This document shows positions 40,075-64,000 of a stretch of DNA of 64,000 nucleotides, in pieces (the first letter of the stretch is position 1; the number at the start of each line of letters is the position of its first letter). The DNA is from Blastocladiella emersonii ATCC 22665. Lineage: Eukaryota > Fungi > Blastocladiomycota. The stretch covers positions 868,001 to 932,000 of the forward strand of contig JANHCV010000007.1 of NCBI GenBank assembly GCA_025594325.1. The letters run 5' to 3'. Below the pieces are notes generated by a model that saw only the letters and a program-made list of their open reading frames with translations, ran no database searches and had not been told where the DNA came from. The translations under genes and the position numbers were made by a program.

Positions 40075-40789
40075 TGCTGGAGTGTGGGGTCTTGAGTTGG
40101 AGAGAATGGATGAGGGTCGAGGCGGGGCACGCTTATATGGGGCCCGAACAAGCGTGGGAACTTGCGTGTGACCCTCTCACAGTGAGCGACGGCGCGGCCC
40201 GACCACAATCTCCCGATTTGCAAGCGTCCGCGCCTCTCGGAGCGCCATGGCGCGGGTGTCGGAAGCGTGCAGCACATAGGGCTAGTTGAAGCGTACAGGT
40301 GCAGGGTGCGAGAGGAAGGTTGAGCACGATGCACGGAAGGCCGCTAAATATACCTACGCGTCGCACACATGTCACGCCGATGACTCGAGCGATGACTCAA
40401 AGGTCACGCCGCCGCGATCAGAGTTGCGATCAGCAGCCTTTCACCTGACCTCGTGGGCGACGTTCAGCCATGGCTTTCGCCTCGCCTCCTTGCACTCTAC
40501 GTAATCGTGGAACTTGATGAATGCAAACCGATAAGGGGAGCGTGTGGGAGCACTGGCAGTTCAAGTACACGTGACCGCGTTGCGCCACAGTCACCGGACG
40601 CGTGCGACCCCGCCCGCGTCACGCGCGTCACGCGCACCGCGCCGATCTCCTTTGTCATCGCCGCGGACCGCTTCACCTCACCGAGCGACGCGTCGGCCCG
40701 CTCACATCGGACGACGCGCCTCCGCATCCCCTCTCTCTCTTGTTCCTTTGACCAGTTGCTAGTATTAGCCACCACATACAGCATGTTGT

Positions 40790-43399: not shown

Positions 43400-45840
43400 A
43401 GACAGCGCAATCGCGCCATAACAACCATAGCACAATACCAGCGGCCAGCTGATCACGCTCGACCTGATCCGCGCAAGGGCGAGAAGACGTGAGTCTACAC
43501 GACGTACAGCTTCGCCCACGTGCCGCTCTACCAGTTCCTGCGCATGGTCACGAACGCGGCGGGCTCGGACGCGGCGAGCAACACAACTGACGCGCAGCCC
43601 GTCGGCGAGGACGGATCCGCGGCAGACGACGATGAGCGCGAGCTCGAGCAGGAGGACGACAAGAACGACAACAAGCGCATCACGTTCTCGAACCGCCTGA
43701 TCACCGACAAGGTCACGATCGCCAACCACTACATGCACCGGCCCGACGAGCTCGAGTCGTTCTCGCTGTACGACTTTGTCCGGTGCTGTCGCGTGGAGCA
43801 CATCAAGTCCGCAACGAACCGTTCGCAGCAGTCCGTGCCCGTCGGCGATGCTGACAACGGCAACGCGCCACGCGCCAAGCGCGGTCGCCACGCCGAGCCG
43901 CGGTACAAGTTCCGCGGCACCCATGCTGCAGTCGGCAAGCTCGTCGTCGCGATGCGCGCGACCAAGGTCGTTCCCGTGCCGCTGTTCAACAAGCAGGTCA
44001 GCCAGTCGTCCGATATCGGCAGCACCGAGTCGCGCGCCATGATCTCCATGATCCTGTTCAAGCCGTTCCGCGCCATCAACGAGGTGGCTCCGGCTCGCGG
44101 CGAGACGTGGTCGCAGACGCTCGATCTCTTCAAAAGCACGCTCGAGCAGGGCAGCGACTGGCTCCGGTGGATCAATAACTTCCGCGACTACGTGAACACG
44201 TCGCCCGGCAAGCTGGTCAACGATTCGGAGGCCGACAACAGCGCGACGCCCGAGCAGGTCGACCTTCAATGCGCCGGCGGTACTGGCATGGGTAACAACA
44301 ACGAGGCTGACGGTGAGATCATGCCCGTCGGCATCGCGCAAGAAGCTCACGGCAACGACGCTTTCCTGCACTAGATCCTCTCGATCATCTCCCAGAACGA
44401 CCAGCACGCGGCCATGCTCCTCATGTCGGCAGTACACTACGGACTGCTCTCGAACTCGAACGCGCCCGTGCCTGCTCTGCCACTCGAGCTTCGCCAGCAG
44501 CTGCTCAAGGTCGACTCGGATCCGGCGTGGTTCGCGCAACTCGCCAACTACACCGACCTGGCCAGAAAGGCGGACGAGGATGCCCGTTGATTGCCGCAGA
44601 ACGCTCGGCGGAGCCACCTCGCACTCGACTCGTTCAAGCAGACGGCGGTGTTGCACCGCCAGCCGTCCATGTGCAGCTCGTGCAGCAGGAGCAGCTCGCT
44701 CCGTACCTTCAAGGGCTCAACGTCGAGCAGCGCCGCGTGGCCGAGCACGTTGAGTCGACGCTCAATGCCATCAGGCGCGGCGACGCTGACGTCGAGCAGC
44801 TCCTAATGCTCGTCCACGGCGAGGCGGGCAAGAGTCGCGTCATCAACTCCATCCGCGACATGTTCGTCTCCAAGGGCTGCAGCTTGTGGCTCAAGAACTG
44901 CGCGCCAACTGGCGTAGCCGCGGCGCCCATTGGCGGCTCCACGATCCACGCCATGTGCGGTATCGGCACCATCGTCTCAGCGACCAAGCCGAAAAGCGAC
45001 AAAGCCAAGGCCGAGCTCGAGGCCTCGTTGGGCCCCGTCAAATGTGTCCTCATCGACGAGATCTCCATGGTCGGCGCCAAGCTCTTTGCCGTAGTGCATC
45101 TGCGCTTCGACGCGCTGTACCCGAGCCGCTACCATCGTCCGTTTGGCGGCCTGCACGTCCTCGCGTCCGGCGATTTCTCCCGGTTCGAGCCTGTCATGGC
45201 CCGCTCGCTCACGGTTCCATCCGAGCAGCTGGTCAAACGCGCACCTGAACCCGAGGTGGATGCAGCTCATGATGGAGACTCAATCGATGCAGGGCGACGG
45301 CGAGCCTCAGCAGCAGAAGAAGAAGCGCGCGTCCAAGCGCAAGGAGCGGCCAGCGGTCAGCAGATCTTGAACCGACGCCAACATTGGTCACGATCAGTGG
45401 CTCGCCTTCGACTCGGTCTTCTTCCTCGTCCAGCAGATGCGGCAGTCGGGCGACGCGAGCTTCCTCAACGTGCTTCAAGACCTGCGCAACTGCATTGTCT
45501 CGCAGCGCGTGATCGAGTACATTCGTTCGCGTCGAGCAGACGTTGTACTTGGCCAGCATGCAAACCGACTCCACGACAGGAGCGACCAGGTCCTCATCAC
45601 GGCGCAGAACTAGGTGCGCGACGCGTGAATCACGATGGCCGCTCGACTGCAAAGTCTGGCGGAGGCAACCACTACCTAGTCCCTGGCTCCTTAATACATA
45701 GCGATTTTGACACGTCATTCACTACTAACCTTCCAACGTGGACGGACTTTCCAACGTGGACGGACTTTGACGTCCGGTCTTTCACAACACAGCCAAGTCG
45801 CCTACTGCTGAGGCAGAGTGTGCAACGCACACACCCCTAG
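43400..45840 (+). mobile_element. Degenerate Helitron remnant (Rep-helicase linker and PIF1 helicase fragments) with intact 3' end
   Basis: Fragments read YTTYSF, HYMHRPDELESFSLYDF, MILFKPFR, LNVEQ, a damaged Walker A HGEAGKS, APTGVAAAPIGGSTIH, VLIDEISMV, FGGLHVLASGDF and FFLVQQMRQSGDASFLNVL. There are stops (e.g. TAG at 44372) and frameshifts. Ends with a GTGTGCAACGCACAC hairpin then CTAG|T. The 5' boundary was not found. Confidence 0.82.
45731..45766 (+). repeat. 18-bp subterminal tandem repeat x2 in the Helitron 3' region
   Basis: TTCCAACGTGGACGGACT at 45731 and 45749. Confidence 0.9.
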
Positions 45841-45886: not shown

Positions 45887-47354
45887 CTACTTGCGCTCGT
45901 GCTTGGCGAACGCGACGATCGGCAGCCCCGAATCCGTGTCGCGCGGCACGTCACGCGTGATCTCGCGGAGCTTGTTCGTTGACATCCGACCGTGGAGCAG
46001 CCGGTCGAGGAGAGCGCACGAGTCGTCAGTGAACTGCTGGCCGAGCGCCCCGTTCGGGTCGTTGAGCGACGCGAGGGCCTCGTTGTACAGCTGCTGAAGC
46101 GGTCCAAGCTGGTACCGATCGATGCCGAGGTGCGAGGCGATGCCAACGTTTGCCTAGCATTGGAGCGAGAGTGAGCTTCCGCGGTCACCGTGAAAGGACG
46201 GCGGGTAGACCGTACAAACGTCGCGATGGCGATCACAATCAGCGGCGCGAGCTGGTGCAGCGTGACGACCTTGGCCCCAGCACCTTTGGTCTGGACCATG
46301 CGTGCGTTGATCCGCTCGATGTACTCGTTGATGGCCGCGACGCTGTTCACTACAAACAGGCACCGGCTGGTCAGTCAAGCAGCTCCATGGGAGCCAGAGA
46401 GAAACAGTAACGAACGATCGTTAGCGCCCTCACGCCAGGTCAAAGTACGTCGGACGACGTCAGCGAGGAACGGGTGGAGCGCGCGAGACTCGCTGCTGCT
46501 GCTGCCGTGGTGCGAAGCTTCGAGCATCCAGCGCTGGTTGAACGCCAGACTGCGAAGCTCCGTCGCCGCGACGTTGGTCGGAAGTTTCGGGCAGATTCCT
46601 GCGTTCTGCGAGTTCTTGAAGATCTTTATTACCGCGTCGCTTGCGGTAGCACGGAACTTGTGCACAACGTCCAAGAAGTGCTTGTGGTACTGAAGGCAGA
46701 GTCGCTTCGAGTCAGTGTCTGGACAGGGGAGCATTGCGAGCGGGGGGAGCAGCAGTACCTCGTCGAATTCAACAACGGGCGATTCACCCTCGCGACACAG
46801 CTCGACGTAGTCTGAGAAGCAGAAGCGACGAACGACCTCGGGAGCGGCGAACGGCCCGTACACCAGGATGCTCACGCGCAACTGCATCTTGAGTTCCATC
46901 GGCAAGTCGCGCAGCATGAACGTCTGCGTCCGCCGCCGTTGGTTGCGCGAACTGAACGGCGTCACGCGTATGAGTCGCGGTCCAGATTGGTGGCGCACAG
47001 CTGCTGTCCGAAGCCGTACCTGCGAGCCCCAGGTTCCTCCTTGACATCCTTGACGTCGCTCGCATCCTCCTCACCCTCGCTCGCACCACCAGCGTTTGCG
47101 CCCACGCCGTCGCCCTCGGACTCCCACTCGTCGCTGCTGGGCCCGTGCGACGGCTCGTGCACGCGATCGGCCGTCCGTGACTCAAGCGGCTGGGTGAGAG
47201 CAGGGCGATTGGGGCCTGATTGAAGCGCTCGGGGGCGAAGCCGCGGCCGACTAGCCGTGGGAACCGGTGGTTCCGCGGGCGCCATGAGCGGCGTGACGGG
47301 CACACCGCGGATGCGTTTGCTGCGGCGGACTAGCATATTTGCATTAGGTTCCAT
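45887..47354 (-). CDS. Unrecognised five-exon array gene, copy 1 (subtype A)
   Basis: MEPNANMLVRRSKR, acidic tract, QLRVSILVYGPFAAPEVVRRFCFSDY, LAFNQRWM, LHPFLADVVRR, VTLHQLAPLIV, ANVGIASHLG, LQQLYNEA, DVPRD. The frame is open after splicing if the third donor is GC (GT in paralogs). Confidence 0.75.
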
Positions 47355-47436
47355 GGTTTAGAAGTGTGTTGATCTTCGTCGCTGGGGCGAGCGGGGAAGA
47401 GCGCTCGAGTTGATTGGGCGGGGCTAGGCGCTGTGT

Positions 47437-47449
47437 GTGGCGCAACACG
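47437..47449 (-). promoter_or_regulatory. Conserved 13-bp upstream motif of the array genes (plus strand GTGGCGCAACRCG)
   Basis: Found 83-112 bp upstream of the ATG of copies 1 (47437), 2 (54830), 4 (57435), 5 (59043) and 6 (61139); partial in copy 7 (62744). Confidence 0.75.
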
Positions 47450-47795
47450 ATTTCGGGCTGGCTCGCTCAACTCTTCGTGCGAGGTCAGCCGGGGTGAATA
47501 AGATATGAATACACATGAATGAGAGAGGGAAAACACAACATCACTCCTCGCGGTCGTGGTCGATGAACGCAACCATGGGGATCCCGTAGTTGGCGTCGCG
47601 GGGCACGTCGACCATGCGACCGTCGCTTCCCATGATGGCCGCCGTCGCCGTAGTGCGCGTGTACAGCTCATCGACGAGATCGCGCGACGCCTTGGCAAAC
47701 TTCTTGCCGAGCGGCCCGTCGCGCTGGTTGAGCGCCCCCATCATCTCGCAGTACAGTTGCTGCAGCGGTGGGATTTGGCGCCGGTTGATCCCCAG

Positions 47796-47814
47796 CATCG
47801 CAAAACCTGCAGCA
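47796..47814 (+). repeat. Left terminal inverted repeat
   Basis: CATCGCAAAACCTGCAGCA; exact reverse complement at 53702-53720. Confidence 0.97.
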
Positions 47815-48100
47815 GCGGTTCGGGGCCCGATCGCGGCCGGATCGCGGCCAGAAAGCAGCATCTGGGCCGGATCTGTGGTATTACCCTGACGCGGACCGGA
47901 TCTGGCTCAGACGCCGCGCGGGCGGCGCGAGCGGGGTCGGGGCAGCGTCTGGGCAGCGTTGGGGCGGTATCCGGCCCAGATCCGGCCCTGATCGTGCCGT
48001 GATCCTGCCCTGATCTCGCCCAGGTCCGGTACAGAGGCTGCCGTGATGCCGCCGCGAAGTGCGCACCGATCGTGTCACGATCCCGCTCGCATCGTGGCCG

Positions 48101-48221
48101 GATCCGGGCACACGTCGCAGTCAGATCCTGGCCATATCGTCGCCAGATCCGGGCCATGTCGCGCTCAGATCCTGGCCGTATTGTCGCCGGATCCGGGCCA
48201 TGTCGCGCTCAGATCCTGACC
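48101..48221 (+). repeat. About 44-bp subterminal tandem repeat x2.7 inside the left end of the transposon
   Basis: GATCCGGGCCATGTCGCGCTCAGATCCTGGCCGTATTGTCGCCG-like units start at 48101, 48146 and 48190. Confidence 0.88.
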
Positions 48222-48375
48222 CAGCCGGGGAGTCATCCGCATAGCATTCGGGTATATATATATACAATATCATCATATCGGAACACGCTTGGGCGGCCGG
48301 CCGGCCGGCCTGCCCGCCCGCTCGCCCGCCCCCACCCCACGGTCAACAGCGTGTGCGCGCGCGCGCGCCCTTGGC

Positions 48376-50161
48376 CTACTTCTTGGCCTTGGTCTTCGTT
48401 CTGCGCGGCATCGAGATGGCGAGCGCCGCGAGCGTCGCCGCGCGCTTGGCGCTGGGCTTGCGCACGCGCGTCGACTTGGCCCGCGTCGCGGGTGGCGCGT
48501 TCTTGACGTTATTGGTTGGGTCCGTCTCCTGCGTGACTTGAGCATCGGACCACGCTGACTCGTTGTCCTCGGCGCGCTCGTCGTCCTCGATGACGCCACC
48601 CTTGGACGCCGCCGACTGGCGCAGCTTGGCCTCGGTCTGGCCGTCGACCACGCCCGCTGGATCTTGAGCAGCAGCCGCAGCATCGACGGCCGCGGCCGGC
48701 GAGGTGAGCCCGTGTGCCGCGCCGACTTGGGGCTCAACCATGGACCTGCTGGTCGATGTTGCACCAGCATCGACACCTGCAGCAGTGGAGCGATGGGCTG
48801 GGAGGTGGGAGCGATGGCATGAGCGTCAGCGTTGGTCACTCGGACGCGGAGACAGCAGCGAAGGGAAGGGAGCATACGACGAGGCCGCTGCTGCAGTGGC
48901 GGAGGTGGTGATGGCCGAGGTGGTGGCGGGGTCGGCAAACGTGGACGACGAAGGGGACTGGCGTCGCTCTCGCCGCCCTCGTCATCGAGAGAGGGGTGGG
49001 AGAGCGGGAGCGGGAGCGGGGACGAGGGGAAGGGCGCGGTTGTAGTCTCAACAGGCACGAGCGAGGGCGCGCCAGTGGCGAGTGGGATTGTGGCTGAGGT
49101 CGAGGCCAACATGGTGAGCGACGCCAGGCCGCTACCGTTGCCGCTGCGCGCGAGCAGCTCAAAGATACCGGGGTCGAGGCCGTTGTGGGCAGCAAGGTGA
49201 AGAGGCGACGCCGGGTTGCTGGGGTTGATGAGCATCGACGACGTGTTGCCCGACGGCATCTCGACCGCGTAGCCCGAGTCGGAGAAGGGCACGGCGCCAG
49301 CGGGTACCGATGACAAGGCCGAGGCCGCTGCTGGTGCCCCGGCGATGGCGAGGCCAGACGCGGGCGTGGCGGTGCTCGGCGGCGGGGCAGTGAACCACGC
49401 GAAGCCCGTACCGTACCCACGTCGGGCACACGTCTCGCGGAACAGCACCGAGAAGCCGGTCACCTTCTCGGTAAAGTCGGGTTCCGCCACGACCTTGCAG
49501 AGCTTGGTGAGGTTGGATTGCTGGTCCGACTGGTTGCGGAAGTCACCCCACCCCTTCGCGGGCGACAGGGCCGAGCCCAGCTAGGCAGCGCGCGCGCGCA
49601 GGGGTGAGCAGGCTGCAGAAAGAAAGCGGCGGTGATGGCGGAGGCGCAACGTACCACGGCGAGAAGTAGAGCGAGGAAGCACTGGGCGCAGTTGACCTTG
49701 AGCACGGCCCCGTCCAGTTCCTGCAGCACCAGCACAGCGATGGATCCAAAGGATACATTCGCTATGAGGGCAAGGTCGGAGGGGGAGGGGAGGGGCGAAT
49801 GAGGGGTACAAGTCGTGTCGAGGGATGGGCAGATGCACGCAACATACAGTTCACGGACGACAGGAGGACGCCGTCGAGCAGCACCTCAAGGATCGTGTTC
49901 GGGTTGCCGGCCGCGTCGAAGAGCACGTTGTTGGTCCACGCAGGCTCGAGGACGCCCATGTTGCCGGCCTTGGCGGCCTTGAAGGCGGCGTGCGCCGTGT
50001 CCCAGGTCCCTGAGGCGATCGAGGCGTTGTTGACCAGCTTCTGCTTGATGAACTTGAGGACCAGCGTGAAGAGGTTGGAGCTCGTCCGCCGTCGTGTCGA
50101 GCGGCAACACGGCAGGCGCCGAGCCGGACAACGGGCTGGGTGCGGGTTGGTGCGACGCCAT
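48376..50161 (-). pseudogene. Transposon accessory gene (ORF-A), four exons, with a frameshift near the start
   Basis: GT-AG introns join SNLFTLVLKFIKQKL...NPNTILEVLLDGVLLSSVN|SNVSFG...FLALLLAV|LGSALSPAKGWGDF... to a basic C-terminus. The ATG at 50161 is out of frame with SNLF; restoring 2 nt near 50090 fixes this. Confidence 0.65.
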
Positions 50162-50407
50162 GACGGGCGACGCTCGGGACGCGAGATGGCGGTGACGGTG
50201 GCGGTGGAGGGCGGGTGGGTCGGATGCCAGCAGGTCGAGGGTGGCGGGTGTCTTGTGGGAGCGGAAGCGACCGAGGCCGAGCAGGCGCAAAGTCAAGAGA
50301 GGGGAGGGAGAGCGGGAGCGGGAGCGGGCGGGGCGGGGCGAGGGGGCGCCCCCTCTTCGCCTGCCTCTTCGCCGCCGCTGTGCAGCAGGCTGTGCAGCAC
50401 GCCGCCG

Positions 50408-50458
50408 AACGCGCAAACGCGCCAACGCGCCAACGCGCCAACGCGCCAACGCGCCAAT
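50408..50458 (+). repeat. 8-bp microsatellite (AACGCGCC) x5-6 between the two divergent transposon genes
   Basis: Direct reading of 50408-50458. Confidence 0.95.
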
Positions 50459-50597
50459 CACGTGCTCGGCGCGTCGCTGCCTCGCCGCCGCGCCGCAATC
50501 TCTCCCGCGCGCGCGCACGCCAACGCTGGGCCGCCCACGCCCAAACTAGTTCCCATGTAACTGCCCGCAACTCGACCCGTCCACCCGTCCATCCATC

Positions 50598-52577
50598 ATG
50601 CCGCCAGCCGAACCCGGCCGCCCCGTCTCCCGCTGGCACGCGGCCGCTGTCGCCACCGCTGCCTCTGGAGCCGCCGCGCCGGCCTCGTCTTCGTCTTCGT
50701 CATCGTCGTTGGTCGCAACGAACCCGACCGCTTCCACTGCGCCTGCCGCATCCGCCGCGCCTGCACCGTACACGGCGCCGCCTCGGCGGAGCGCCCGCCC
50801 GCGCAAGCCCAACCCGCGCGCCAACCTCAGTTGTATCCCGCCCTGCACCTTCAAATCCGATTCGTACGCGGGCCTGCACATCCACGAGGCCAGCTGTCAC
50901 GTCGTCGACGCCCTCCTGAACCAAAATGCACGGGCCCCGGCCGTTGCGTCTGGGCACCAGCCGGGTGAGATCTGCCGCGCCGCGCCGTCTGGTCCCGGCG
51001 GGGTGTTTACAGCTCCGCCACCACCTCCGCTACCACCTCCGCTACCACCGCTGCAGCAGCAGCCTCAGCAGCACTCGCAGCACTCGCAGCACTCGCAGCT
51101 CAAGCAGCAGTTGCAGCAGGATGTCGTCATGCAGGACTCGCCCAAAAACGACTCGCAGGATGGCGTCGGCTCCACCGAGGACGCCGGGACCGTGACCAAC
51201 CTCAATGGCGACGTTGTCATGGAGGACGCCAACGCCGAGACCGTGACCAACGGCGCGCCCGCTCCCGTCGCTGAATCCACGTCCGCTGCGCCCGCCACGA
51301 CCGTGCTCGCCTACGGCGCCAAGCTCCCGATTGGCAAGCACCGTGTTCTGGGAACGACGCTGCCCGTGCCCATTGGCCACGAGCCAATCCCGCGCGCCGT
51401 CCAGCAGTCGCCCACCCTCACCAACGCGCCGTGGGACCCGTTCCCGGACTTTGTGTCGTGGTGCTTTACCTTCTTCTGCATGGTCAAGGCCGCGCTCTCG
51501 GACTGCAAGATTGACGCGCTCATCAACCTGATCAACCTGATCGCCGCCATCGTCATTGTCAACAAGTTCGGCAACCTCAACATGTTCCCCGACCGCCCGC
51601 TCGTCAAGCTGCCCAAGGGCATCGTGCAGCGCAAGCTTGTCAAGAAGAGCGCCTTCTACTGCAAGTTCAAGTGCTCCGTGCTCACAGACTCGGATGGCAA
51701 CAAGTACAACTTCATCACGCTCAGCGTCGTTCCCTTGCTGCTGCGCGGGTCCCGCCACGGCGTCACGCTTGACTGGCTTGGGAACAAGTTCCCAAACCTC
51801 CTGCACGGCCTCACCAAGGCCATGGCCAAGCACGTCCTGCTTGACATCGAGTACGTACTCCCGCATCACTGCCCTCTCTCGAAGTCATGCACTGACGCCA
51901 TTCTCCTGTTCGCTCCCTGTCCTTTTCTGCCACCCAGCAACCGCAACGCCAACGCTGCGCTTCGTCCCAAGGACCTTACCGATGCTGCTGGCCGCGTGTT
52001 GCAGGTCTGCGGGTTCCAGTGCATGGAGATCCATTGCACAAGCGACCTCAACCGCCAGCCAATCGTTGAGATCCTCAAGGCCCGCATCACCAAGTCCCAT
52101 GGTCGCCTCATCAATGACTTTTTTGTGGTACGTTTAACCTCGCCTTGTTATCTTCCTGCCGCTTTACACCACTTGTTACTGATCGCCTCCCCCTGGCGAC
52201 AAACCCAGGCTTGACGCAGCAACCAGGGCGGGCTCAACATCATGGAGCCCATCCTCTTCCTCGACTTTGCCGTCAAGGGCTTTGACAACCGCTTCCAGGT
52301 CGCCATCAGTCGCTGGTTCTCGCGGTTCAAGCCCAACAGCAACACCATGCTCGCCCGCGACGCCATCACTCACCTAATCCAGGTGCGCCGCGAGGACGGC
52401 CTTGCCGTCGTACCCGTTCCCGCCATTGTCGGCCCTGTCCATCTCGTGCCAACGTTCCTCAAGCACCTCGTCAACGGGAAGCCCAAGAAGAAGCCGTACT
52501 ACCACCTTAATTGGTTCATTGGCCGCGAGCAGTTCTTCCAGGAGTCTGACACGGCCTTCGACTCGATCCTGCGCTGA
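50598..52577 (+). CDS. Plavaka-like transposase derivative lacking the central catalytic region (about 600 aa after splicing)
   Basis: N-terminal zinc-finger-like CIPPCTFKSDSYAGLHIHEASC and PWDPF...AALSDCKIDALINLI. C-terminal SRWF...DAITHL...VVPVPAIVGPVHLVPTF...YYHLNWFI. No DDE-core motifs in between. Introns 51851-51937 and about 52128-52226. Confidence 0.72.
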
Positions 52578-52773
52578 GCAACGCTCGCCCACCATCCCCA
52601 CCCCGCCGCGCTCGCCCCTCCTCTCCACCACGTTTGCAACCGCCATGGGCTAGTCCGGCTTGGCTTCATTGCATTCTTTGCCTCACCCAAGTCCGTCGGT
52701 TGCGCACGGCTGGTCACACACAGCTGCAACTTCACGCGCGGTCCCGACGGTCGCCGGCCCACCACCATCTCCG

Positions 52774-52869
52774 CCGACGCCGGTTCTCGCTCGCCCGCGG
52801 CTCCGCTGACGCCGGTTCTCGCTCGCCCGCGGCTCCGCCGACGCCGGTTCTCGCTCGCCCGCGGCTCCG
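52774..52869 (+). repeat. 32-bp tandem repeat x3 inside the transposon
   Basis: C[CT]GACGCCGGTTCTCGCTCGCCCGCGGCTCCG at 52774, 52806 and 52838. Confidence 0.95.
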
Positions 52870-53701
52870 CGGCGGCAGTCGCATCGGCTGCGCGCGCCGC
52901 AACCTATGGCCCGCACTCCGCCTACTCGTTTTCGCGGGTCGACGGGCATCATCAACAGCGCTGAGCCGCCCGACAAGCGTGCCGCCGCGCGCGACCGTGC
53001 CTCGGCGGCTCGCCGCGCCTTGGCGCTTGTCGAGATCTCTCGCGCGCGCGACTTGGGCCCGCCGCGCAGAAGACAGTGGCGGTGAAGCCGTCGCCGCCGG
53101 ATCGTTCCGACACGCGCCACCTCGCTCAAGACCCGGCGCGGGTCAAGTCGCCGCCGTCCTCGCGCGCTGGACCTCGCGCTGCCGCCGCCGCGGACCGTGC
53201 CACCGCAGCGGCCGTGTGGCCGGCCGGGCCGACTCGCGGCCATCGCATCAGCTCAGCAGCCACCGCTACGCACGGTGGCCGCCGCCGCCGCGGTGGTCGC
53301 TGCTGCCGCGTCCCCACGCTGTCCACCAGTCCCTGGTGGGCGGGTATGGCGTCGCCCACGGCGGGCATCGCGACCACGTTGCGCAGCGACTACTCTCGCT
53401 CGCCCTCGCCCCGCGGATCGACCCATAGCAATCAATACATGCATTTGATACTTGACACCGCGTCCCACCGTCCCGCCGCCGCGGCTTGCGGCCATGGCAG
53501 CTGCAGCTCACGGCCAAGTCCCCCGTCTGGGCCAGATCTGGGCCTGGCAACCAGATCTGGCCCGGATCTGAGCCAGACGGCTCATCTGGGCCGGATCCCG
53601 CCCCGACACCCAAGCCCCTCCGCGCGCGCCCACCCCGCCACCCGCGTCTGAGCCGGATCCGGCCCAGAAGCGCAGTCTGGCTCAGATCTGGGCCAGAGCG
53701 G

Positions 53702-53720
53702 TGCTGCAGGTTTTGCGATG
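53702..53720 (-). repeat. Right terminal inverted repeat
   Basis: TGCTGCAGGTTTTGCGATG, followed by CCAG. Confidence 0.97.
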
Positions 53721-54953
53721 CCAGGTGCGACACAAAGCCGACGTTGGCCTAGCTCGGAGCACGTCAGTGGTTGAGATCACTCGTTGCGGAGAGAAGACCG
53801 TACCAAAGTCGCAAGGGTCGCGATAAAGAAGGGCGCAAGGCCGCGGAGCGTCGCCAGCTTGGCCCCTGCCGCGCTGCCGCTGCGCACCACGCGCTCGTTG
53901 AGCCGCCCAAGATACGCCTCAATCACGTCGAATCGCCAGCCTACATTCGCGTGCCGCGAGTCAGTGGATCAGTCAGCGGCTGTGATGGTTCAGAGTCAGG
54001 GTCCCAGGCAGCCGTACCCTCCCGCCAAGTCATCGCGCGCTGCACGAGCTTGACCAGGAACGGATGCAGCGCAAACTCGAAATCACTGTCGCCCGTCGGT
54101 TGCTGAATCATCCAGTGCAGGTTGAAGCGAGCGTCCAAACGTTGTCGTCCGCGTCAAGATTTGGTAGGGTTGGGAGGATCAACGCGGTGCTTTTGGTCTT
54201 GAAGAGCCAGACGGAGCACGATGGATGCCAGGTGCGAGCGAAGGTAGCGCTTTGCCGGCAGGAGCATCTTGTAGTACTAGAACAGTCTGTGCGTGAGCTT
54301 CGTTTTCTCAAAGGTCAGTTGTGAGAAAACGTATGTCGTCAAATTTGAGAAGCTCGCCCTCGCTCTCTTTCTCGCTGAGGAGCTCGACATAGTCGGCGTA
54401 GCAGTGCTTCCGAACGACTTCGGGCTTGGCAAAGGGACCGTAGACCATGACGCTCGCGCGGAGCTGCAGCCAGAGTCCCGGTGACTGCTTGGACAGGAAC
54501 ATGTTTTGCTGGCGCTTGGTTGCGGGGCTATCAGATGCGCAAAGGTTGCATGAGCTGTAGAAGGACTCGCATTAGAGGGAGAGAGCGGCACTAACCCAGC
54601 GTCGTCCTTGTCATCATCGTCATCTTCCTCACTGGGCACGTCTGACAGATCGTCCACGCTCTCCGCCTTGACCGAGCTCTCCTCGAGCTTTACATTTGGC
54701 GAAGCCCCTTGAGGAGAGCATGAGGTTCCATGGCCTGCTGATACGTCAGCGCATACGTGCGAAGGGAGGGAGAGGGGATCAAACCGCTGATGAAGGCCAA
54801 GCGTCGGTGCGCGTTTCAGCCTCGCCGGCGTGGCGCAACGCGTTTTGGCCTTCCGACATCGGGCCGTCAGACTTGGTTGACCACCCGCAACGATCGAGAC
54901 GGGCGACCAACAATCGATTCCGTATTATACACCACAAGCGCACACAACATCCA

Positions 54954-55872
54954 TCACTCTTCCTTGTCGTCGCTGCCGAGGAACGCCACAAGCGGGAGCC
55001 CAGACTGCGCCTCGCACGGCACCTCGCCGATCCTGGCTTGATCGTCGACGCTCGAGTCGTGGATCAGCTTGCGGCACTGCTTGGCGAACCGCGTGCCAAG
55101 AGGCCCGTTCTTGTTCTTGAGCGCCTCGAAAAGCGTCGAGTAGAAGTGAAGCAGCGGCGGCAGGTCCTTGGCCAAGACGCCCAGGTGGTTCGTGATGGCG
55201 CAGTTGATCTGTTTGTAGTCACCGGAGTCAGTCTCAAGGTTCGGAGGTTCCCGAAACGTTGAAGACGAGAGAAACGTACGGAGCAAACCATGGTGAGCAC
55301 CATGAGCGGGGCGAGCTGGTCAAGCGTGACAGGCGCAGGCGGGGGTTGAACGAGCGACTTTTGGGCCACGCGCGCGTTGAGGCGGTCGAGGTACTTGCCC
55401 ACGGCCGCAACACAGTTCTCTGAATGCCGAAGGGCCGTGTGAGCGCAGAAGTACAGCAAATCATTTTGGCAAAATTACGTACCGTCGCGCCAGCGAAGTG
55501 CTCGCTGGACCACGGTCACGAGGAATGGGTGAAGGTCGTAAACGCCGGCGGTCCCGTCCTCGGCCGCCACGAGCATCCACGCCAGGCGTTGCGTTACGTT
55601 GCGTCGCGGAGCGATGGGCATCAACGCGGACCGGCTCGACGAAGGCGCGCGCAGCCTCGCGTCAATCACCACGTTTTGATTACCTGATTTCGGAACGCGT
55701 CTTGCAGCAGGGGTAAAAGCACCCCTGCTCGCAGCGCGAACCTGCGCAGAGTGCCCTTTGCTTCTCCCACTTTGCAGCACCACGGCACGAAGTCATCAAC
55801 ACGATGGGACGCGGATCCGCGAGACGCGATCGGGCGCCGTCGAGGCGCTAGTCTCTGCCGCGAACGCGGCAT
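54954..55872 (-). pseudogene. Array gene copy 3 (subtype C), 5'-truncated
   Basis: The last three exons are recognisable (LAWML...LHPFLVTVVQRALRWRDG; YLDRLNARV...VTLDQLAPL; GPLGTRFAKQCR...SGLPLVAF). Exons 1-2 and the 13-bp motif are missing, and there is a frame change near 55675. The 5' coordinate is approximate. Confidence 0.7.
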
Positions 55873-55932
55873 GGGGATCGACCGAAGTGGGTATATTGAT
55901 ACTATTGTGAGAATGGGCTCAAAGCTCACTGT

Positions 55933-57323
55933 TCACTGTTCACGCTTGACCGCCGAAATGAGAGCGAGTCCCGTATCCTCGTCGCGCGACACGTCGCGCG
56001 TGATCTCGCTCAGCTTGGCCTGCGAGATGTGCTCGCGTAGCATCTGGTCGACGAGGGCGCAAGAGTCCGCGACAAACTGGTCGCCGAGAATGCCCTCCGG
56101 GTCGTTGAGCGACGTGATGGCCTCGTTGTACAGCTGCTGGAGCGGCGGAAGCTGATTGCTGTCAAGGACGAGGTGCGAGGCAATCCCAACGTTGGTCTAC
56201 CGGCGAGCGCGCAAGGTGAGTCGTCTGGGAGGCGGTCAGGAGCGAGGATCAGACCGTACAAACGTCGCGATGGCGACGACGATAAGCGGTGCAAGTTGGT
56301 CCAGCGTGACACATTTCGCCTCGGCCTGCCCGTTGGTCCGAACCAAGCGGTCGTTCACGCGCTCGAGATAAGTCTCGATGGCTTCGAAGCTATTGACTAC
56401 AGGAGCGCGCTTTGGTGAGCTATACGCGTGCGTGTGCATCGAGCACGCGGCGAGGAGGCGAGCGAAGGCGGGCACGTACGATTGCGCGAACCGTCGCGCC
56501 AGGACATGGCCCGCCGCACGGCTTGGGCGAGGAACGGGTGCATGGCGAAGCTGCTGCTCTCGTCTGCGGTCTGCTGGACCATCCAGTGTTGTTTGAACTC
56601 GAGGCTCCGGATAGCACATGTCGATTCGAGAGGAGGCAGCGCGGGCAGGATGTCGGCGCAGGTACGGTTCTTGAGGATCTTTCCCGCCCACTCATTCAAG
56701 GATCGGCGACACTTAAGCACCGTTTCCGCGAACAGCCAGCGGTACTAGCACACCGCAACGAAGCGTCAGCTTTGCGCACAAACGCGGCGTTGCGGGGTCG
56801 CAAGTACCTCTTCAAAATTCATGTGCGGTCCGTCCCCGCCAACAAGCGCGATGTAGTCGGCGTAGCAGTAACGACGAATAACCTCGGAATCCGCAAACGG
56901 CCCGTACACGTAAACGCTCACGCGCACCTGCATCCTCACCTCCAGCGGCACGCCGCTCAGCGCCGTGCTTCGCCGGCGCCGCTTCGTGTCGTTCCTGGGG
57001 AGAGCGAAGGGTAGAGCGTGAGTTCACGGCCACCGGTCTCAGCTGCGCCGGCTAGACACTGAGACGTGCCCGCGGTCGTTGCCATCCTCGTCCGCCTCGG
57101 CCTCCTCGGCCCCATCATCGCTGAATTCATCATCCTTATCATACTCATCATCGCCATCCTCTGAGCTGCTGTTATCATCCATCGACGCAGGTTCGCGCGC
57201 TTGAGGGCCGAGCCGTGGCCGCGTAGAGTTGGGGCGACGCAGCACCAGCGGAGCGGGTTTCGGCGCGGCGAGCCCGCGAAGGCGACGGCTTTGCCGCGGC
57301 CGTGACTTTGCATCAAGTTTCAT
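55933..57323 (-). CDS. Array gene copy 4 (subtype A), apparently intact
   Basis: MKLDAKSRPRQSRRLR, acidic tract, QVRVSVYVYGPFADSEVIRRYCYADY, MHPFLAQAVRR, VTLDQLAPLIV, LPPLQQLYNEA. All four introns keep the frame. Confidence 0.78.
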
Positions 57324-57567
57324 GGTAGCGTGTGCAGGGTGCAGCGATCTCGGCGTGCTTTGGCGGAGAGATGAGCGGAGCGTACCTGAGCGAGCGCGAT
57401 GGCGGTGTGCCGTGTTTCAGGCCCAGTCACCCGAGTGGCGCAACGCGAGGGATCCGTCGCTCCTCGGCGTTGCTCGTTGAACTTGGAGTGCGGATTGAAC
57501 GGGCAGAGGATTCAAACTCTGAATGTATTGAGGCAACTATTGAGGTATGCAGGGACATGCTTATTCC

Positions 57568-58952
57568 TCACTCCGCGCGTTCACGCTTGGTGAATGCCGC
57601 GACGGGCAGGCCCGAGTCAGCGCCGCGCGGCACGTCGTTCATAGTTTCGCGCAGCTTGATGGACGAAACACGTCCTTCAAGCAGCTGGTCCACGAGAGTG
57701 CACGAGCCGTCGACAAACTGCTTGCCGAGGATGCCGTTCGGATCGGACAGCGATGCCATGGCCTCGTTGTACAGGTCCTGCAGCGGCGGCAGTCGAAAGT
57801 GATCAGCGCCGACACGCGTCGCGACGGCGACGTTTGCCTATAGGTCACCGGGATGAGTTCTCGGCCGACACAACGTGGAGCAACCGAAAGGAACGTACAA
57901 ACGTGGCGATAGTGGTCACGATCAGCGGCGCGATGTGGTGCAGCGTGACGATCTTGGCCTCGGTCCCCTTGATCCGCGCCATGCGCTTGTTGAGCCGAAC
58001 GAGGTAGGCCTCGATCACGGCAGCGCTGTTGACTAGGTTGCGGTGCGAAAGAAAATGACGGGTGTTAGCGGAAAACAGTTTGGCGAGAGGGATAAGTGAG
58101 ACGACAAACTTTCGCGCATGTTCTCGCGCCAAGCGAGAGACCGTCGAACGATCTCGACGAGAAACGGGTGTAGCGTGCCGAGCGGTGCTGCATTCGAGTC
58201 GGCCGGCGCCGCGAGCATCCACTTCTGGTTGAAGGCAAGCGTTCGCAGCTCACTCGCAGCGACGGTGGTCGGAAGTGCTGGGAGCGGGACGTGGCGCCGG
58301 TTTTTGAAGATTTTGGTTGTTATCTCGGCCGTTAGCCTTCGGCATTTAGCAGCGAGCCCCACGAATGCAGCGTGGTACTAGAGTCGCACGTGTTAGTTGG
58401 ACCCGCATCCTTGGTGCGAGCGTGTTAGGGCGGCACCTCGCCAAACTGCATGACTGAGTCCGATTCGCCAGTAAACTGCTCCATATAGTCGGCGTAGCAG
58501 TGGCGGCGAACGATCTCGCGGTCCGCGTACGGCCCGTGCACCAAGATACTCACACGGAGCTGGTTTTTCAGGACCGTGGGCAGGGCATTCAGCTCCGCCG
58601 CCCGCCGCCGTGCCCGTTCTTTGTGGTCTGAGCTAAATTCCGCAATACGACACGGCAATGAGTTGGTGCTATCGATAGCGAAAGCGCAACCGGGACCGTA
58701 CGGGCGAGCCTTGTCCTCGCTTCCGTCGTCGCCCTCGCTCACATCGACCTCGGACTCCTGCTCCGACTCGCCGCTGCTCGAGAGATCAGACAGTTGACCT
58801 TCATTGGGAGCGGAGCTCACCTTGGCCGCCCGGGGACGCAGGCGCGGCCGTGAAGCGACAGCAAGCGGTGACTCCACGGGCACGGCGGCAGGCTCAGACC
58901 GGTCGCGGAGACGTTTACTACGGCGCACTGGCGCGTTTGCATGAGGTTCCAT
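57568..58952 (-). CDS. Array gene copy 5 (subtype A), apparently intact
   Basis: MEPHANAPVRRSKRLR, QLRVSILVHGPYADREIVRRHCYADY, LAFNQKWM, LHPFLVEIVRR, VTLHHIAPLIV, LPPLQDLYNEA, DVPRGADSGLP. GT-AG introns at homologous positions. Confidence 0.82.
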
Positions 58953-59213
58953 GGTCGAGAAGCGTCGGTTGCTGTTGGGCCGGAGAGGGCGAGCGGCTCG
59001 AGCCTCATTGCTGGCCGAGCAGGTCGGCGCTCGACCCGTGGCGTGGCGCAACGCGATTTCCTTGTGCCATCCCGACTCCTCCCTTCGACTCAGGCTCTTT
59101 CGCGCCCATGGTGATGCGATCGAGGAAAGAGTCACTTAGGGGATACTTTTTATATACTCCTATCTACGCAACTGCCGGCTCGCGAGACGAGCTGTTCATG
59201 GACGAGGGGTAAC

Positions 59214-61037
59214 TCACTCCTCGTACTTGATGAACGCGATAGTCGGCAGCCCGAACTTGCTGTCGCGAGGAACGTCGTAGGCGCCGCTGAGAACGGACGC
59301 CACGCTCCCGCTCTCGCCGCGCAGCTTGTCGAGGAGAGCGCGCGAGGCCTTGGCAAACTTCTTGCCAAGCGGGCCGTCGCGGTCGTTGAGCGCGCGCACC
59401 GTCTCGTAGTAGAGCTCGGTGAGCGGCGGGAGGTTGCGGTGCCGGCCGAGGCCGAGGTGCGACGCGATGCCGATGTTGGCCTATGTGCGCGGGAGGGAGA
59501 CAGTGAGCGATGGCGGTGCGATGAACAAGTGAAGACGTACGGTCACCGCGATCGTCGCGACGATGAGCGGCGCGAGCCCATGTAGCGTCACCGGCTTGGC
59601 GCCTGGACCGTCGGTGCGTGCGACGCGATCGTTGACGCGCTTGAGGTACTCGTCGAGCGCGTCGAAGCTGTTGCTGGCTACACAGGCGTGGGGCGGGAGG
59701 ATTCCGTCAACCTCGTAGCTCGAATAAGGAAGCAGGGCGCGTACCGTTGTGCCAGTACATGCCCCGCCGCACGACCTCGACGAGACACGGGTGCAGTCCG
59801 TACGCCTTGCCGTCGCTTGTCGAGGTCTGGATCATCCAGTGCAGGTTGAACGCAAGCGTCCGCACGGCGCTCGGTGACTCAAACGCGGGCAGCGTCGGTA
59901 GGATCGGCAGGTTGCGCGAGCCCTTGAAGAACGACATGGTGACACTGCGAAGCTGGGAGCGAAGCTTCGTGAACGCCGCCGCATAGTGTTTCTGGTACTA
60001 CACACGAGAGTGATAGGACACGGGTCAGCTCAGCGCACGCTGTTTCGCGTGCTAATCGACCCGCGCGCCGTACATCTTCAAAGCTGAGCGGACTTCCATC
60101 GCCGCCGCCGCAGAGCTCGAGGTAGTCGGTGTAGCAGTGGTCGCGAATGACCTCGGGAGCGGCGAACGGGCCGTACACGAACACGCTGGCGCGCAGCTGC
60201 ACCTGGATCTCCGACGGCAGCTCGGCCGTGGATGGGTCCGACGGACGCTGGGGCGCGGCACTAAATCGACGCGGAAAAGTTCAGCCGGCAACGGTTCCAC
60301 GAGCGAGCGGCTACCACGAACCCGTCGTCGTTGTCGTGGGTTTGGTTCTCGTTGCTGTTGTCGTTCCCGCTCGCGCTCGCCTCCAGGTTCGCCTCCTCGA
60401 TCCCTTCCGACCCAAGCGAGTTCTTGCCAGATCGAACGTCAAACTGGTCGAGCGTGGTTCCAGCGTCAAACTCCTCCATCTCGGCCGGCTCCTCGGCTTC
60501 CGCCATAGGCGCGTCCTGCGACTCCTCGTCGACTTCAGCCGCTTGGGCCACCGCAGCGGTCCCGCCCTGCGACACGTCGTCGGCTTCAGTCGCCACAGCC
60601 TCCGCCGCCGCCGCTTCAGTCGACGCTGCGGCAGCGATCTCGGGAGGTGGCTCGTCCAACACGAGCTCGCTCTCCGGTCCGGCGACCGCCGCCACCTCAG
60701 CAGATGCAGCAGTAGTGGTCTCGGGCTGTGGTTCGGCCACTACGTGCTCGCGCTGCGGCTCGTCGGCCTCACTCGACGCGGCCCCCGCCGCCACCCCGGC
60801 GGACGCAGCAGCAGCGGTCTCGGGCTGTGGATCGGGCACCACTACTTCTGCTGCAGAAGAAGGTGTTGATGAGGCGGCGACAACGGCAACGGGTGCGATG
60901 GCAGCGGCCTTGCCCCTCGATCGGCGCTCCTCGCGCTGCTGGCGCGGGCGCGGTTGCGTCGGCCGCAGCCACCCGGCCGCCACGCGCTGCTGGATGCGCC
61001 GGCTGCGTCGAGTCGAGTCTTTTGCATCAGGTTCCAT
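59214..61037 (-). CDS. Array gene copy 6 (subtype B), apparently intact, with an expanded acidic exon 1
   Basis: MEPDAKDSTRRSRRI, three ExVxxEPxPExxxAAS repeats, QLRASVFVYGPFAAPEVIRDHCYTDY, LAFNLHWM, LHPCLVEVVRR, RDGPLGKKFAKASR, DVPRDSKFGLP. Confidence 0.82.
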
Positions 61038-61207
61038 GGTCGGTGTGTGTCCGAGTTGCTTCATTGAGGTGGTCAAGGCGGGAGGGAGAGCGAGAGCGAG
61101 AGGTGAAGCTCGCTGTTGGCGCAGCAGCTGTTCCCGCTGTGGCGCAACGCGCAAATCCCAGCAAACCAAGGTATACGATAGAAATACATGTGCAACCTCG
61201 GACACAT

Positions 61208-62687
61208 TCACTCTTCCTCATCGTCGTCATCGTCATCATCGCTGTCGAACATGGCGACGAGCGGGACACCGGACCGCGTGTCGCGGCGCACGTCGCCGTT
61301 CGGGGCGCGGTCGCCCATAGCCTCGGTGCACAGGCCCTGGACCAGCGCGCGGCACTGCTTGACGAACCGGTACCCGAGCGGGCCGTCCTGCTTGTTGAGC
61401 GCCTTGAGCAGCTCGGCGTACAGGAAATGGAGCGGCGGGATCGTCTCGCGGTTGAGGCCGAGGCGGATCCCGATCGCGTAGATAGCCTGCAGGAGACGCG
61501 GTTAGGAGTCGAGCGGAGGCGCGGAGGAGCGACAGCAGCATGTTCGTACGTAGCACGCCGTCGTGAGGACCAAGAGCGGCGCGATTTGGTCAAGGACGAC
61601 GCGCTTGGGCGGCGGCCCGTGCGCCGGCGAAGCCTTGGCCACACGCGCGTTGAGGCGGTTGAGGTAGTCGGATACGGCCACGATGCACTGCGCGCCCGCA
61701 CCTAGGTGATGGTGGAAAGCTGGTCAACACACGACGGACGATTACTCGTTCCCACACAAAGACGCACGAGCGTTCCAGCGGAGCATTCGCTGCGCCGCCA
61801 ACATGAAGAACGGGGAGATATCGAAGGACCCGGCGGGCCCGTTCTTGGCGGGCGCGAGCATCCACGCCAGGTTGAACTTGAGCCCGGCGAGCTCGTCCGT
61901 GGACGCGAAATCGGGGAGCGCTGGTTGCGGCAGCCCAACCTCAGACCCGGACATGATCTGGTTCACAATGATGATGCTGCGATTGCGGATACAGCCGGCG
62001 GTAGTCGAGACGAACTTGGTATACTAGTAACGTGCGGGAGGCGCATGTGTGAGCTTTGAGCGACCGACAAGTGAACGCAAAGGCGACGGACCAGCTCGAG
62101 CGAGACCAGCGGGCCCTCAGCGGCCAGAATCTCGCAATAGTCCGGATAGTAGAACTCGCGGATGACCTTGATCCCCGCAAACGGCCCGTGGACCAGAATG
62201 CACGCGCGGATCTGGCTCTTGAACGCCGGCGAGAGGTCACTCAGGTGCGTCCCGCGCGTCGGGTTCGCGGATGACTTGGACTGCGAGGTCCGCGCTCGAC
62301 GTGCGCGTTTCGCGGGTCTGCCACGGAACAGTCATGTCAGGGCCGAGACAAAGTCATGCACAAGCGAAACGGGACGTCATACCGCACAGTCTCCACTTCC
62401 TCGCCGTCCACATCGCTGCGGTCGTCGAACGCGGCTTCGCCGCCGGTCGCTTCCTCCTCCTCGTAGTCCATGTCCTCGCCATTGTCCTCGGCCATGAACA
62501 CATCATCATCGTCTTCATCACCAAGCGGCGCCTTGCGCTTCGTGCGAGTAGCGATCGGCGCGCCTGTGGACCGCGCGACGGCGGGTCCCTCGTTCGGGTT
62601 GGACGGGATCCACCCCATTGGGGCGCGCATCTCTGGCCGAGCATCGGGGCGAGAGATGCTCTCGGGTGGCATTGCATCAAGATTCAT
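61208..62687 (-). CDS. Array gene copy 7 (subtype C), apparently intact
   Basis: MNLDAMPPES, acidic tract, QIRACILVHGPFAGIKVIREFYYPDY, LKFNLAWML, YLNRLNARV, VVLDQIAPL, KQDGPLGYRFVKQCR, poly-Asp end. Confidence 0.78.
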
Positions 62688-62821
62688 GGGTTTTGATGAA
62701 GGGTTTAGCGGGAGGGGTGGGGAGGACGCAGTTCCAGGTTCGCGTGGCGCAGGCTCGGCACGGCGACGGATCAAGCAGTTACAGAGACCGCGGGTCATAT
62801 AATGATACAGGTGCACGCCAC

Positions 62822-64000
62822 TCACTCCTCGTGGTCGAGGAACGCGACGTCCGGGATCCCGTAGTCAGCGTCGCGGGGCACGTCCACGATGCGACTGTCC
62901 TGCTTGATCTGCCGCACCACGCGATCGTTGTACAGCTTGTCGATGAGCTCGCGCGAGGCCTTTGCGAACCGCTTGCCGAGCGGCCCGTCGCGCTGGCTGA
63001 GCGCGGCCATGACCTCGTTGTACAGCTGCGGCAGCGGCGGCAAGTTGCGGCCGTTGATGCCCAAGTGCGACGTGATGCCGACGTTGGCCTAGCCAGTACG
63101 ATTGAGTGAGCGACTGAGTGGGTGTGCGTGCGACCCAGCGCAGTGGACTGAATCGTACGAGGACCGCGATCGTCGCGACGATGACGGGCGCAAGTCCGCG
63201 GAGCGACGCTGACTTGACCCCAGCCGCGCCGGTGCGGGCCACACGCTTGTTGAGTCGCTGGAGGTGCGCTTCGACGGCGCCGAACCGGCTCCCTACACAC
63301 GCGCGCGTGTCGTGTCAGCGAGGAAAGCGAGCAGCACGAGTCGGTGTCACGAAGGGAAACAAGGGCACCGTCGCGATGGTTTACGGCCCGTTTCACGACT
63401 TCGGCAAGGAACGGGTGCAGAGCAAACTCGCCGCCTTCATTGCCCGTCGGCTGCTGGACCATCCAGTGCAGGGACGTCCTTGTTCGCACCGCGCGCCGGC
63501 AACGTCGGGCGAATGGCCGCGGTGGACTTGCATTTGAACAGCCTGGTCGTGATCGCGTTGAGCTGAGAGCGGAGATGGTGGACAACGTCCAAGAACAGCG
63601 CGTGGTACTAGGTCACGCACGGATCCATCAGTTCGAACTGACCTTGCCGATCGTCCAACAACGCAGCGCGGTGGGTCAGCTTACCTCATCAAAGCCAAGG
63701 GACTCGCCGCCGGGAGCCAGCTCCAGATAGCCGGCGTAGCAGTGCTGGCGGACCACGTCAGGCTCAGCGAACGGCCCGTAGATCAGGACGCTCGCGCGAA
63801 TCTGCATCCGGATGCTTGAGGTCACGTCGGTCTCTGACCCGCTCCGCTGGCGTTTTGCCGCGGGCCTGAGGTTCGAGTAAGCTACAGCATCGCAAAAGCG
63901 GAACGCGAAGCAACACGTGTCCATCCTTGTCAACATCATCGTCTTCTTCGTCGTCCTCCTCCTCTTCATCGTCCTCCTCCTCTTCGTCGTCCTCCTCGCC
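62822..64000 (-). pseudogene. Array gene copy 8 (subtype B); 5' end beyond the window; frameshift in exon 3
   Basis: QIRASVLIYGPFAEPDVVRQHCYAGY; ANVGITSHLGINGRNLPPLPQLYNE...RDGPLGKRFAKASR. Exon 3 lacks about 17 nt (the RTLAFN codons) near 63470 relative to copy 6, shifting the frame. Confidence 0.75.

Follow-up and report, generated by a model that had tools for sequence, protein, structure and literature searches.

Tandem five-exon genes of the blastoclad Blastocladiella emersonii encode proteins with a helical core that probably shares the predicted fold of DUF6532

A stretch of 64,000 nucleotides from contig JANHCV010000007.1 of the zoosporic fungus Blastocladiella emersonii ATCC 22665 (GenBank assembly GCA_025594325.1, positions 868,001 to 932,000 of the forward strand), in the following termed the window, contains eight head-to-tail units of one gene family on the minus strand between positions 45887 and 64000, a result on which all methods of detection agree. 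The genes consist of five exons and encode proteins of 350-520 residues that combine a disordered N-terminal region with an all-helical globular core of 260 residues. Structure prediction and comparison indicate that this core and the fungal domain DUF6532 (PF20149) have a common fold and are probably remote homologs, a conclusion that we consider likely and that compares one set of models with another.

The family was delimited in the window by motif scans, three-frame reading, tblastn with the annotated protein of copy 1 (c1), and a family hidden Markov model (HMM) run against all open reading frame (ORF) pieces. Over the whole window, tblastn and HMM confined family exons to the minus strand between 45890 and 63999, and neither the copy-1 protein nor the HMM detected a family exon in positions 1-45000. 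Eight head-to-tail minus-strand genes with four common intron positions had been described in a first-pass annotation of this DNA, and tblastn, HMM and splice mapping bear out that description. The units are the following:

45887-47354, minus strand: c1, subtype A, intact, H9P43_006247 (P0001); exons 47020-47354, 46759-46951, 46416-46689, 46216-46349 and 45887-46153
53722-54731, minus strand: c2, 5' part, subtype B; decayed exon 1, exon 2, frameshifted exon 3, exon 4, intron 4 and the first codons of exon 5
47541-47794, minus strand: c2, subtype B, 3' rest of exon 5, downstream of a transposon
54954-55600, minus strand: c3, subtype C, 5'-truncated; second half of exon 3, exons 4 and 5, no promoter motif
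55933-57323, minus strand: c4, subtype A, ORF intact, weak (non-consensus) intron-1 donor
57568-58952, minus strand: c5, subtype A, intact
59214-61037, minus strand: c6, subtype B, intact, with a long exon 1; H9P43_006253 (P0006, 519 residues)
61208-62687, minus strand: c7, subtype C, intact; H9P43_006254 (P0007)
62822 to beyond 64000, minus strand: c8, subtype B; exon 1 leaves the window, exon 3 carries a frameshift near 63468-63482, the 3' part is H9P43_006255 (P0016)

The assertion that several copies stay intact holds clearly for c1, c5, c6 and c7 and, with the reservation of the weak intron-1 donor, for c4, which is probably intact; it does not extend to c2, c3 and c8, the disabled three of the eight. 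Beyond the window the array goes on as 006256 and 006257 and thus comprises at least ten units. Independent genomic short-read contigs from the same sample match the assembly over 57560-63559 except for a single nucleotide at 62719; they do not reach across the frameshift site of c8. At 62719, in the spacer upstream of c7, the short-read contig (run X3) is one base shorter than the assembly, which may reflect a polymorphism or an assembly error.

Annotation of these genes is a practical problem, with several NCBI models in the arrays of this family being chimeric. The model of c1 (H9P43_006247) is spliced differently in exon 1 and at intron 3, c3 is fused with adjacent copies in H9P43_006251 (P0004), and P0002, P0003 and P0005 also combine units that lie next to each other. 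Because P0002, P0003 and P0004 join neighboring units, the family alignment (A3), from which an HMM of 262 positions was derived, was assembled from clean sub-ranges and in-frame exon references; a MAFFT alignment in which exon-2 fragments were misaligned was discarded.

To map the splice junctions, all GT..AG introns that keep the ORF open were listed between conserved anchors, and each candidate was scored by comparison with copy 1. Introns 2, 3 and 4 occupy homologous positions in every copy that retains the respective exons, measure 59-84 nucleotides and mostly have GTACGK donors and YAG acceptors. Intron 1 lies just ahead of the basic patch that precedes the core, intron 2 is flanked by F-[DEG]-[ED] upstream and by Y downstream in all copies, intron 3 ends before xNS[VFA] in all copies with a donor that shifts by a few codons from one copy to another, and intron 4 interrupts a hydrophobic helix between IATF and ANVG. 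Since intron positions are common across the copies, the five-exon structure is real. The N-terminal region starts with a basic segment resembling a nuclear localization signal (NLS; MEPxA..RRSKRxR), continues with a proline-rich stretch containing SRPRLRPRA and a D/E tract, and includes, after intron 1, the second basic patch; the translations show motifs of the RRSKRxR and KRARRAR types as well as D/E tracts. Exon 1 had been characterized earlier as hypervariable and basic-then-acidic; the basic, proline-rich and acidic order is found, while the recurrence of MEPxA..RRSKRxR and SRPRLRPRA shows that the exon is not purely hypervariable. Tandem Repeats Finder detected no tandem repeat in exon 1 of c6.

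No Pfam family was recovered by hmmscan at E-values up to 10 from exon pieces, 11 annotated proteins or the 33 rows of alignment A5. AlphaFold models were obtained for the cores of c1 (28 alignment rows; predicted local distance difference test, pLDDT, 77.7; predicted template modeling score, pTM, 0.74) and c6 (33 rows; pLDDT 89.0, pTM 0.84), the latter being the better of the two. Both are all-helical, with about 12 helices, one small hairpin and a long buried hydrophobic helix. When the models were compared with the AFDB clusters by Foldseek, DUF6532 proteins accounted for seven of the top 30 matches of c1, among them the best ones, at probabilities of 0.63-0.96, and for 18 of the top 30 matches of c6, at probabilities of 0.98-1.0 over 230-260 aligned residues. 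The template modeling (TM) score of the c6 comparisons was 0.43-0.54 when normalized by the query and up to 0.51 by the hit for short hits. By Foldseek the core and DUF6532 fall into the same fold, in a comparison of prediction with prediction and at a borderline TM score, and the match was reproduced with two paralogs of different subtype (A for c1, B for c6). Searches of the PDB, in which Foldseek probabilities did not exceed 0.14 and VIA-align Z scores did not exceed 4.6, and of the viral structures in BFVD returned background only, and those of the ESM Atlas, by features as well as by shape, yielded rows at chance level; the DUF6532 matches therefore stand well above noise. A confident full-length hit to a well-characterized family, which the first-pass annotation had named as evidence that would speak against its interpretation, was found neither in Pfam or the PDB nor by profile search.

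The likeness to DUF6532 concerns the all-helical architecture, the size of about 230-260 residues and the predicted topology, and it extends to protein layout, as in many of the DUF6532 matches the domain is preceded by several hundred N-terminal residues, and to the occurrence in multiple copies per fungal genome. On the other hand, sequence similarity is not detectable, the host is a blastoclad whereas DUF6532 is known from mushroom-forming fungi, and the array genes differ in being tandem, in having a common promoter element and in falling into three interleaved subtypes. The one mention of DUF6532 found in the literature is in a comparative paper, which lists it, with KDZ, Plavaka and CxC2, among extra domains enriched in certain Ganoderma genomes. 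Residues 1-65 of the c6 core (about 59900-60226, minus strand), which form the first three helices, matched about ten homeodomain/HMG entries with Z of 3.2-4.0 and root-mean-square deviations of 1.8-3 Å, below the level that the tool regards as meaningful.

By sequence, the family is an orphan restricted to B. emersonii in current databases. When 1.84 billion representative proteins were searched exhaustively with hmmsearch, 24 were found at E ≤ 1e-10, along with one spurious row; 22 of the 24 carry H9P43_ names of the B. emersonii assembly, P0021 is an unnamed protein on the same contig, and P0024 and P0025 were not looked up. The earlier designation of the family as unrecognized stands in that there is no Pfam match and no homolog outside this genome among the 1.84 billion proteins, and needs amendment in that the core has a predicted DUF6532 fold. 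A count that includes the remaining annotated fragments comes to about 35 family units, most of them arranged in tandem on three contigs. At three other loci scanned with the HMM, four to seven further units each lie in tandem, on one strand per array:

around H9P43_006206-8 (locus L002), one strand: other array, about seven units
around 006777-8, on another contig, one strand: other array, four units
around 006338-40 (locus L004), one strand: other array, four units

Two units of the first of these arrays have lost intron 3, exons 3 and 4 forming one ORF (L002:10591-11067 and L002:12116-12571). In the third, H9P43_006338 (1725 residues, L004:3054-9074) was considered as a fusion of a RabGAP-TBC domain with a family domain and rejected, the model being most likely an annotation merge of a RabGAP-TBC gene with the adjoining first family unit of that array.

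Five units of the array in the window are preceded by a 13-bp element, CGCGTTGCGCCAC, which is exact upstream of c2, c4, c5 and c6, has one mismatch at c1 and is located 83-112 nucleotides before the ATG:

47437-47449, minus strand: promoter motif of c1, CGTGTTGCGCCAC (one mismatch), 83 nucleotides before the ATG
54830-54842, minus strand: promoter motif of c2, exact, 99 nucleotides before the ATG
57435-57447, minus strand: promoter motif of c4, exact, 112 nucleotides before the ATG
59043-59055, minus strand: promoter motif of c5, exact, 91 nucleotides before the ATG
61139-61151, minus strand: promoter motif of c6, exact, 102 nucleotides before the ATG

The common promoter motif noted at first pass is thus present before these five copies and absent at c7 and c3. 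The intergenic DNA around the element is otherwise unalignable between copies. The three other arrays contain nine more 13-mers, all on the coding strand and eight of them 440-560 nucleotides before the exon 2 of a unit; at L002:14621 a 13-mer lies downstream of the last unit with no family unit beyond, possibly marking a lost copy. Two exact plus-strand copies of CGCGTTGCGCCAC occur at 40576-40588 and 42517-42529, in DNA of lower GC content with no adjacent family gene and nothing annotated downstream. These two share flanks neither with each other nor with the array promoters, by which the 13-mer as part of a repeated element was ruled out. Its reverse complement, GTGGCGCAACGCG, contains an E2F-like GGCGC core in agreement with the E2F-only pattern NNSGCGSN and, after it, an MCB-like ACGCG (MCB, ACGCGT; both patterns from PMC4862756), a resemblance and nothing beyond that.

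A codon alignment of the cores gave amino-acid identities of 30-59% between copies and synonymous divergences (dS) of 0.64-1.37, which are if anything underestimates given a GC content of 0.77-0.89 at third codon positions. Within subtypes, the ratio of nonsynonymous to synonymous divergence (dN/dS, omega) was 0.39-0.64 with bootstrap 95% intervals below 1, and no pair had an omega above 1; a ratio near 1, which according to the first-pass annotation would have counted against its interpretation, is not what the core displays. Reading frames and splice sites have been retained across a dS of about 1. Selection on the core is purifying but relaxed, and the paralogs are old, constrained and fast-evolving. 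In a tree of exon-5 peptides, c3, c7 and 006256 form a robust C clade with units of two other arrays. Subtype B was seen only in the array studied here; its members c2 and c8 and, less tightly, c6 branch close to the midpoint root. The A-like units form a large clade that has expanded. Read along the plus strand, the order of subtypes is A-B-C, A, A-B-C, B, followed by a C-type exon 5 in 006256 outside the window, and this succession is compatible with an old triplet duplication.

Duplication and decay have taken place in transposon-rich DNA, as documented by a Plavaka-like insertion in c2, the loss of the 5' part of c3, the frameshifts that c2 and c8 carry and, beside c1, a PIF1/Helitron-like remnant. 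Rapid evolution under birth and death had been proposed for the family. Fast sequence evolution, duplication and decay all agree with this; the age of the copies judged from dS and omega values below 1 qualify it, since old copies under purifying selection imply long-term turnover and not recent bursts. The insertion in c2 is bounded by the sole pair of terminal inverted repeats (TIRs) in the array:

47795-53721, no strand assigned: transposon of 5.9 kb with TIRs, in exon 5 of c2; TIRs of 23 nucleotides at 47795-47817 and 53699-53721

Its termini read (G)CATCG..CGATG(C) and its target-site duplication (TSD) comprises 2-3 bp; PlavakaB elements have termini CATCA..TGATG and TSDs of 2-3 bp (PMC12730594), and judged by these features the insertion fits the PlavakaB lineage. 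In silico excision restores the family reading frame ANVGFVSHLGINR. The transposase ORF at 50598-52214 (plus strand) gave no Pfam hit. Separately, an ORF at 44527-45840 (plus strand) that adjoins the 3' end of c1 contains a PIF1-like helicase domain (E 2e-16) and is consistent with a Helitron remnant.

As to function, we put forward that the array proteins are co-regulated nuclear adaptors or regulators, a proposal drawn from sequence features to which we assign an even chance. The basic NLS-like motifs suggest a nuclear localization and would mediate import, the helical core would bind a protein or nucleic acid partner and owe the specificity of each paralog to variable surface segments, and the acidic tracts could contact basic partners such as chromatin proteins. 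Through the common promoter element, the whole family may be induced jointly at a single stage of the life or cell cycle. The array would have grown by tandem and segmental duplication and lost copies through transposon insertion, truncation and frameshift. Much less probable, in our estimation, is a more specific version in which subtypes A, B and C are the subunits of one stage-specific nuclear complex that is switched on via the 13-bp element and polices transposons or chromatin.

Several observations weigh against the reading of the core as a DUF6532 relative or against the role proposed for it. The PF20149 profile produced no hit in about 40 family sequences at E ≤ 10, the gathering score for membership not being reached, and a relaxed profile search at the same threshold brought back the family itself and no DUF6532 protein. 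The TM score of about 0.5 is borderline and both of the structures compared are predicted. DUF6532 is itself without known function, so the fold provides no mechanism. The core is nearly charge-neutral and lacks a clear DNA-binding signature. The 135-nucleotide spacer upstream of c7 does not contain the 13-mer. No RNA runs are listed for the organism, the four runs found being genomic DNA of one sample in which intron-skipping joints did not occur, and a search of the text of the genome paper met with no RNA-seq or transcriptome term.

Four other explanations of the array deserve to be considered. The family could derive from, or still belong to, the passenger or accessory genes of KDZ/Plavaka-type transposons, DUF6532 then being transposon-borne and the arrays domesticated or fossil. 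The location amid mobile DNA (the Plavaka-like element in c2, the PIF1-helicase remnant at 44527-45840) and the listing of DUF6532 alongside KDZ, Plavaka and CxC2 for certain Ganoderma genomes would be in line with such an origin; however, co-listing in the literature is not evidence of physical linkage, and with filters off and E ≤ 10 the family HMM found nothing between 47795 and 53721 or in the rest of the window outside the array. The accessory gene of the c2 transposon, whose product of 366 residues is H9P43_006249-like, shares the locus with the array but resides inside a TIR-bounded mobile element and has no HMM similarity to the family, and neither of the two annotated products of the transposon has a Pfam hit on record. 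No family unit was found as a passenger between TIRs and TSDs; the units abut head-to-tail, have their own promoters and conserved introns, lack flanking TIRs and are old (dS at least 0.65). On this evidence we regard a transposon origin as unlikely. Decaying pseudogenes or over-predicted ORFs in GC-rich DNA would account for the three disabled units out of eight and for NCBI models that are chimeric and have no transcript support, yet four to five units have kept full frames and canonical splice sites across a dS of about 1, omega lies significantly below unity, the 13-bp element is conserved within otherwise diverged spacers and the core models fold confidently, such that the family is very improbably a non-functional remnant.

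An explanation by genetic conflict, i.e., arms-race paralogs that, like KRAB zinc-finger clusters, would act in the repression of transposons, or else in meiotic drive or in self/non-self recognition, is suggested wholly by analogy and appears doubtful to us. Vertebrate KRAB zinc-finger clusters are comparable in that they, too, are tandem arrays of diverged and presumably nuclear paralogs in DNA rich in transposons, where copies are gained and lost, and paralog identities of 30-59%, an elevated omega of 0.4-0.8 and the limitation to one species in current databases would suit an arms race. Unlike these clusters, the array encodes neither zinc fingers nor a repressor domain, its predicted proteins come with no evidence of DNA binding or transposon targeting, and it has no recent duplicates; divergence is old and no pair exceeds an omega of 1. 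Structure searches of the PDB and the AFDB clusters revealed no resemblance to a known driver, toxin, NLR or repressor domain, and with regard to meiotic drivers and allorecognition systems the core is similar to no solved or named domain. A membrane-active helical bundle of the Bcl-2/colicin type, into which the long hydrophobic helix (LAPLIVxTIAxxANVGIASHLG) would insert, might be read from the conserved hydrophobic stretch of about 22 residues in the center of the model and from weak Bcl-2-like rows in two libraries. These matches are at background (Z 3.4, probability 0.10), the proteins have no signal peptide and highly charged, NLS-like flanks, and the helix is confidently modeled as buried, all of which renders membrane activity highly unlikely.

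The finding of the predicted DUF6532 fold in an orphan family of an early-diverging and experimentally tractable zoosporic fungus suggests that the fold of this multi-copy fungal domain without known role is much older and more widely spread than the Pfam profile detects. If subtypes A, B and C did form one nuclear complex, the DUF6532 fold, of which mushroom-forming fungi have an expanded set, would gain its first functional handle. The array, in which intact copies neighbor naturally disrupted ones and which offers clear subtypes and a candidate common promoter element, constitutes a compact test bed for such questions.

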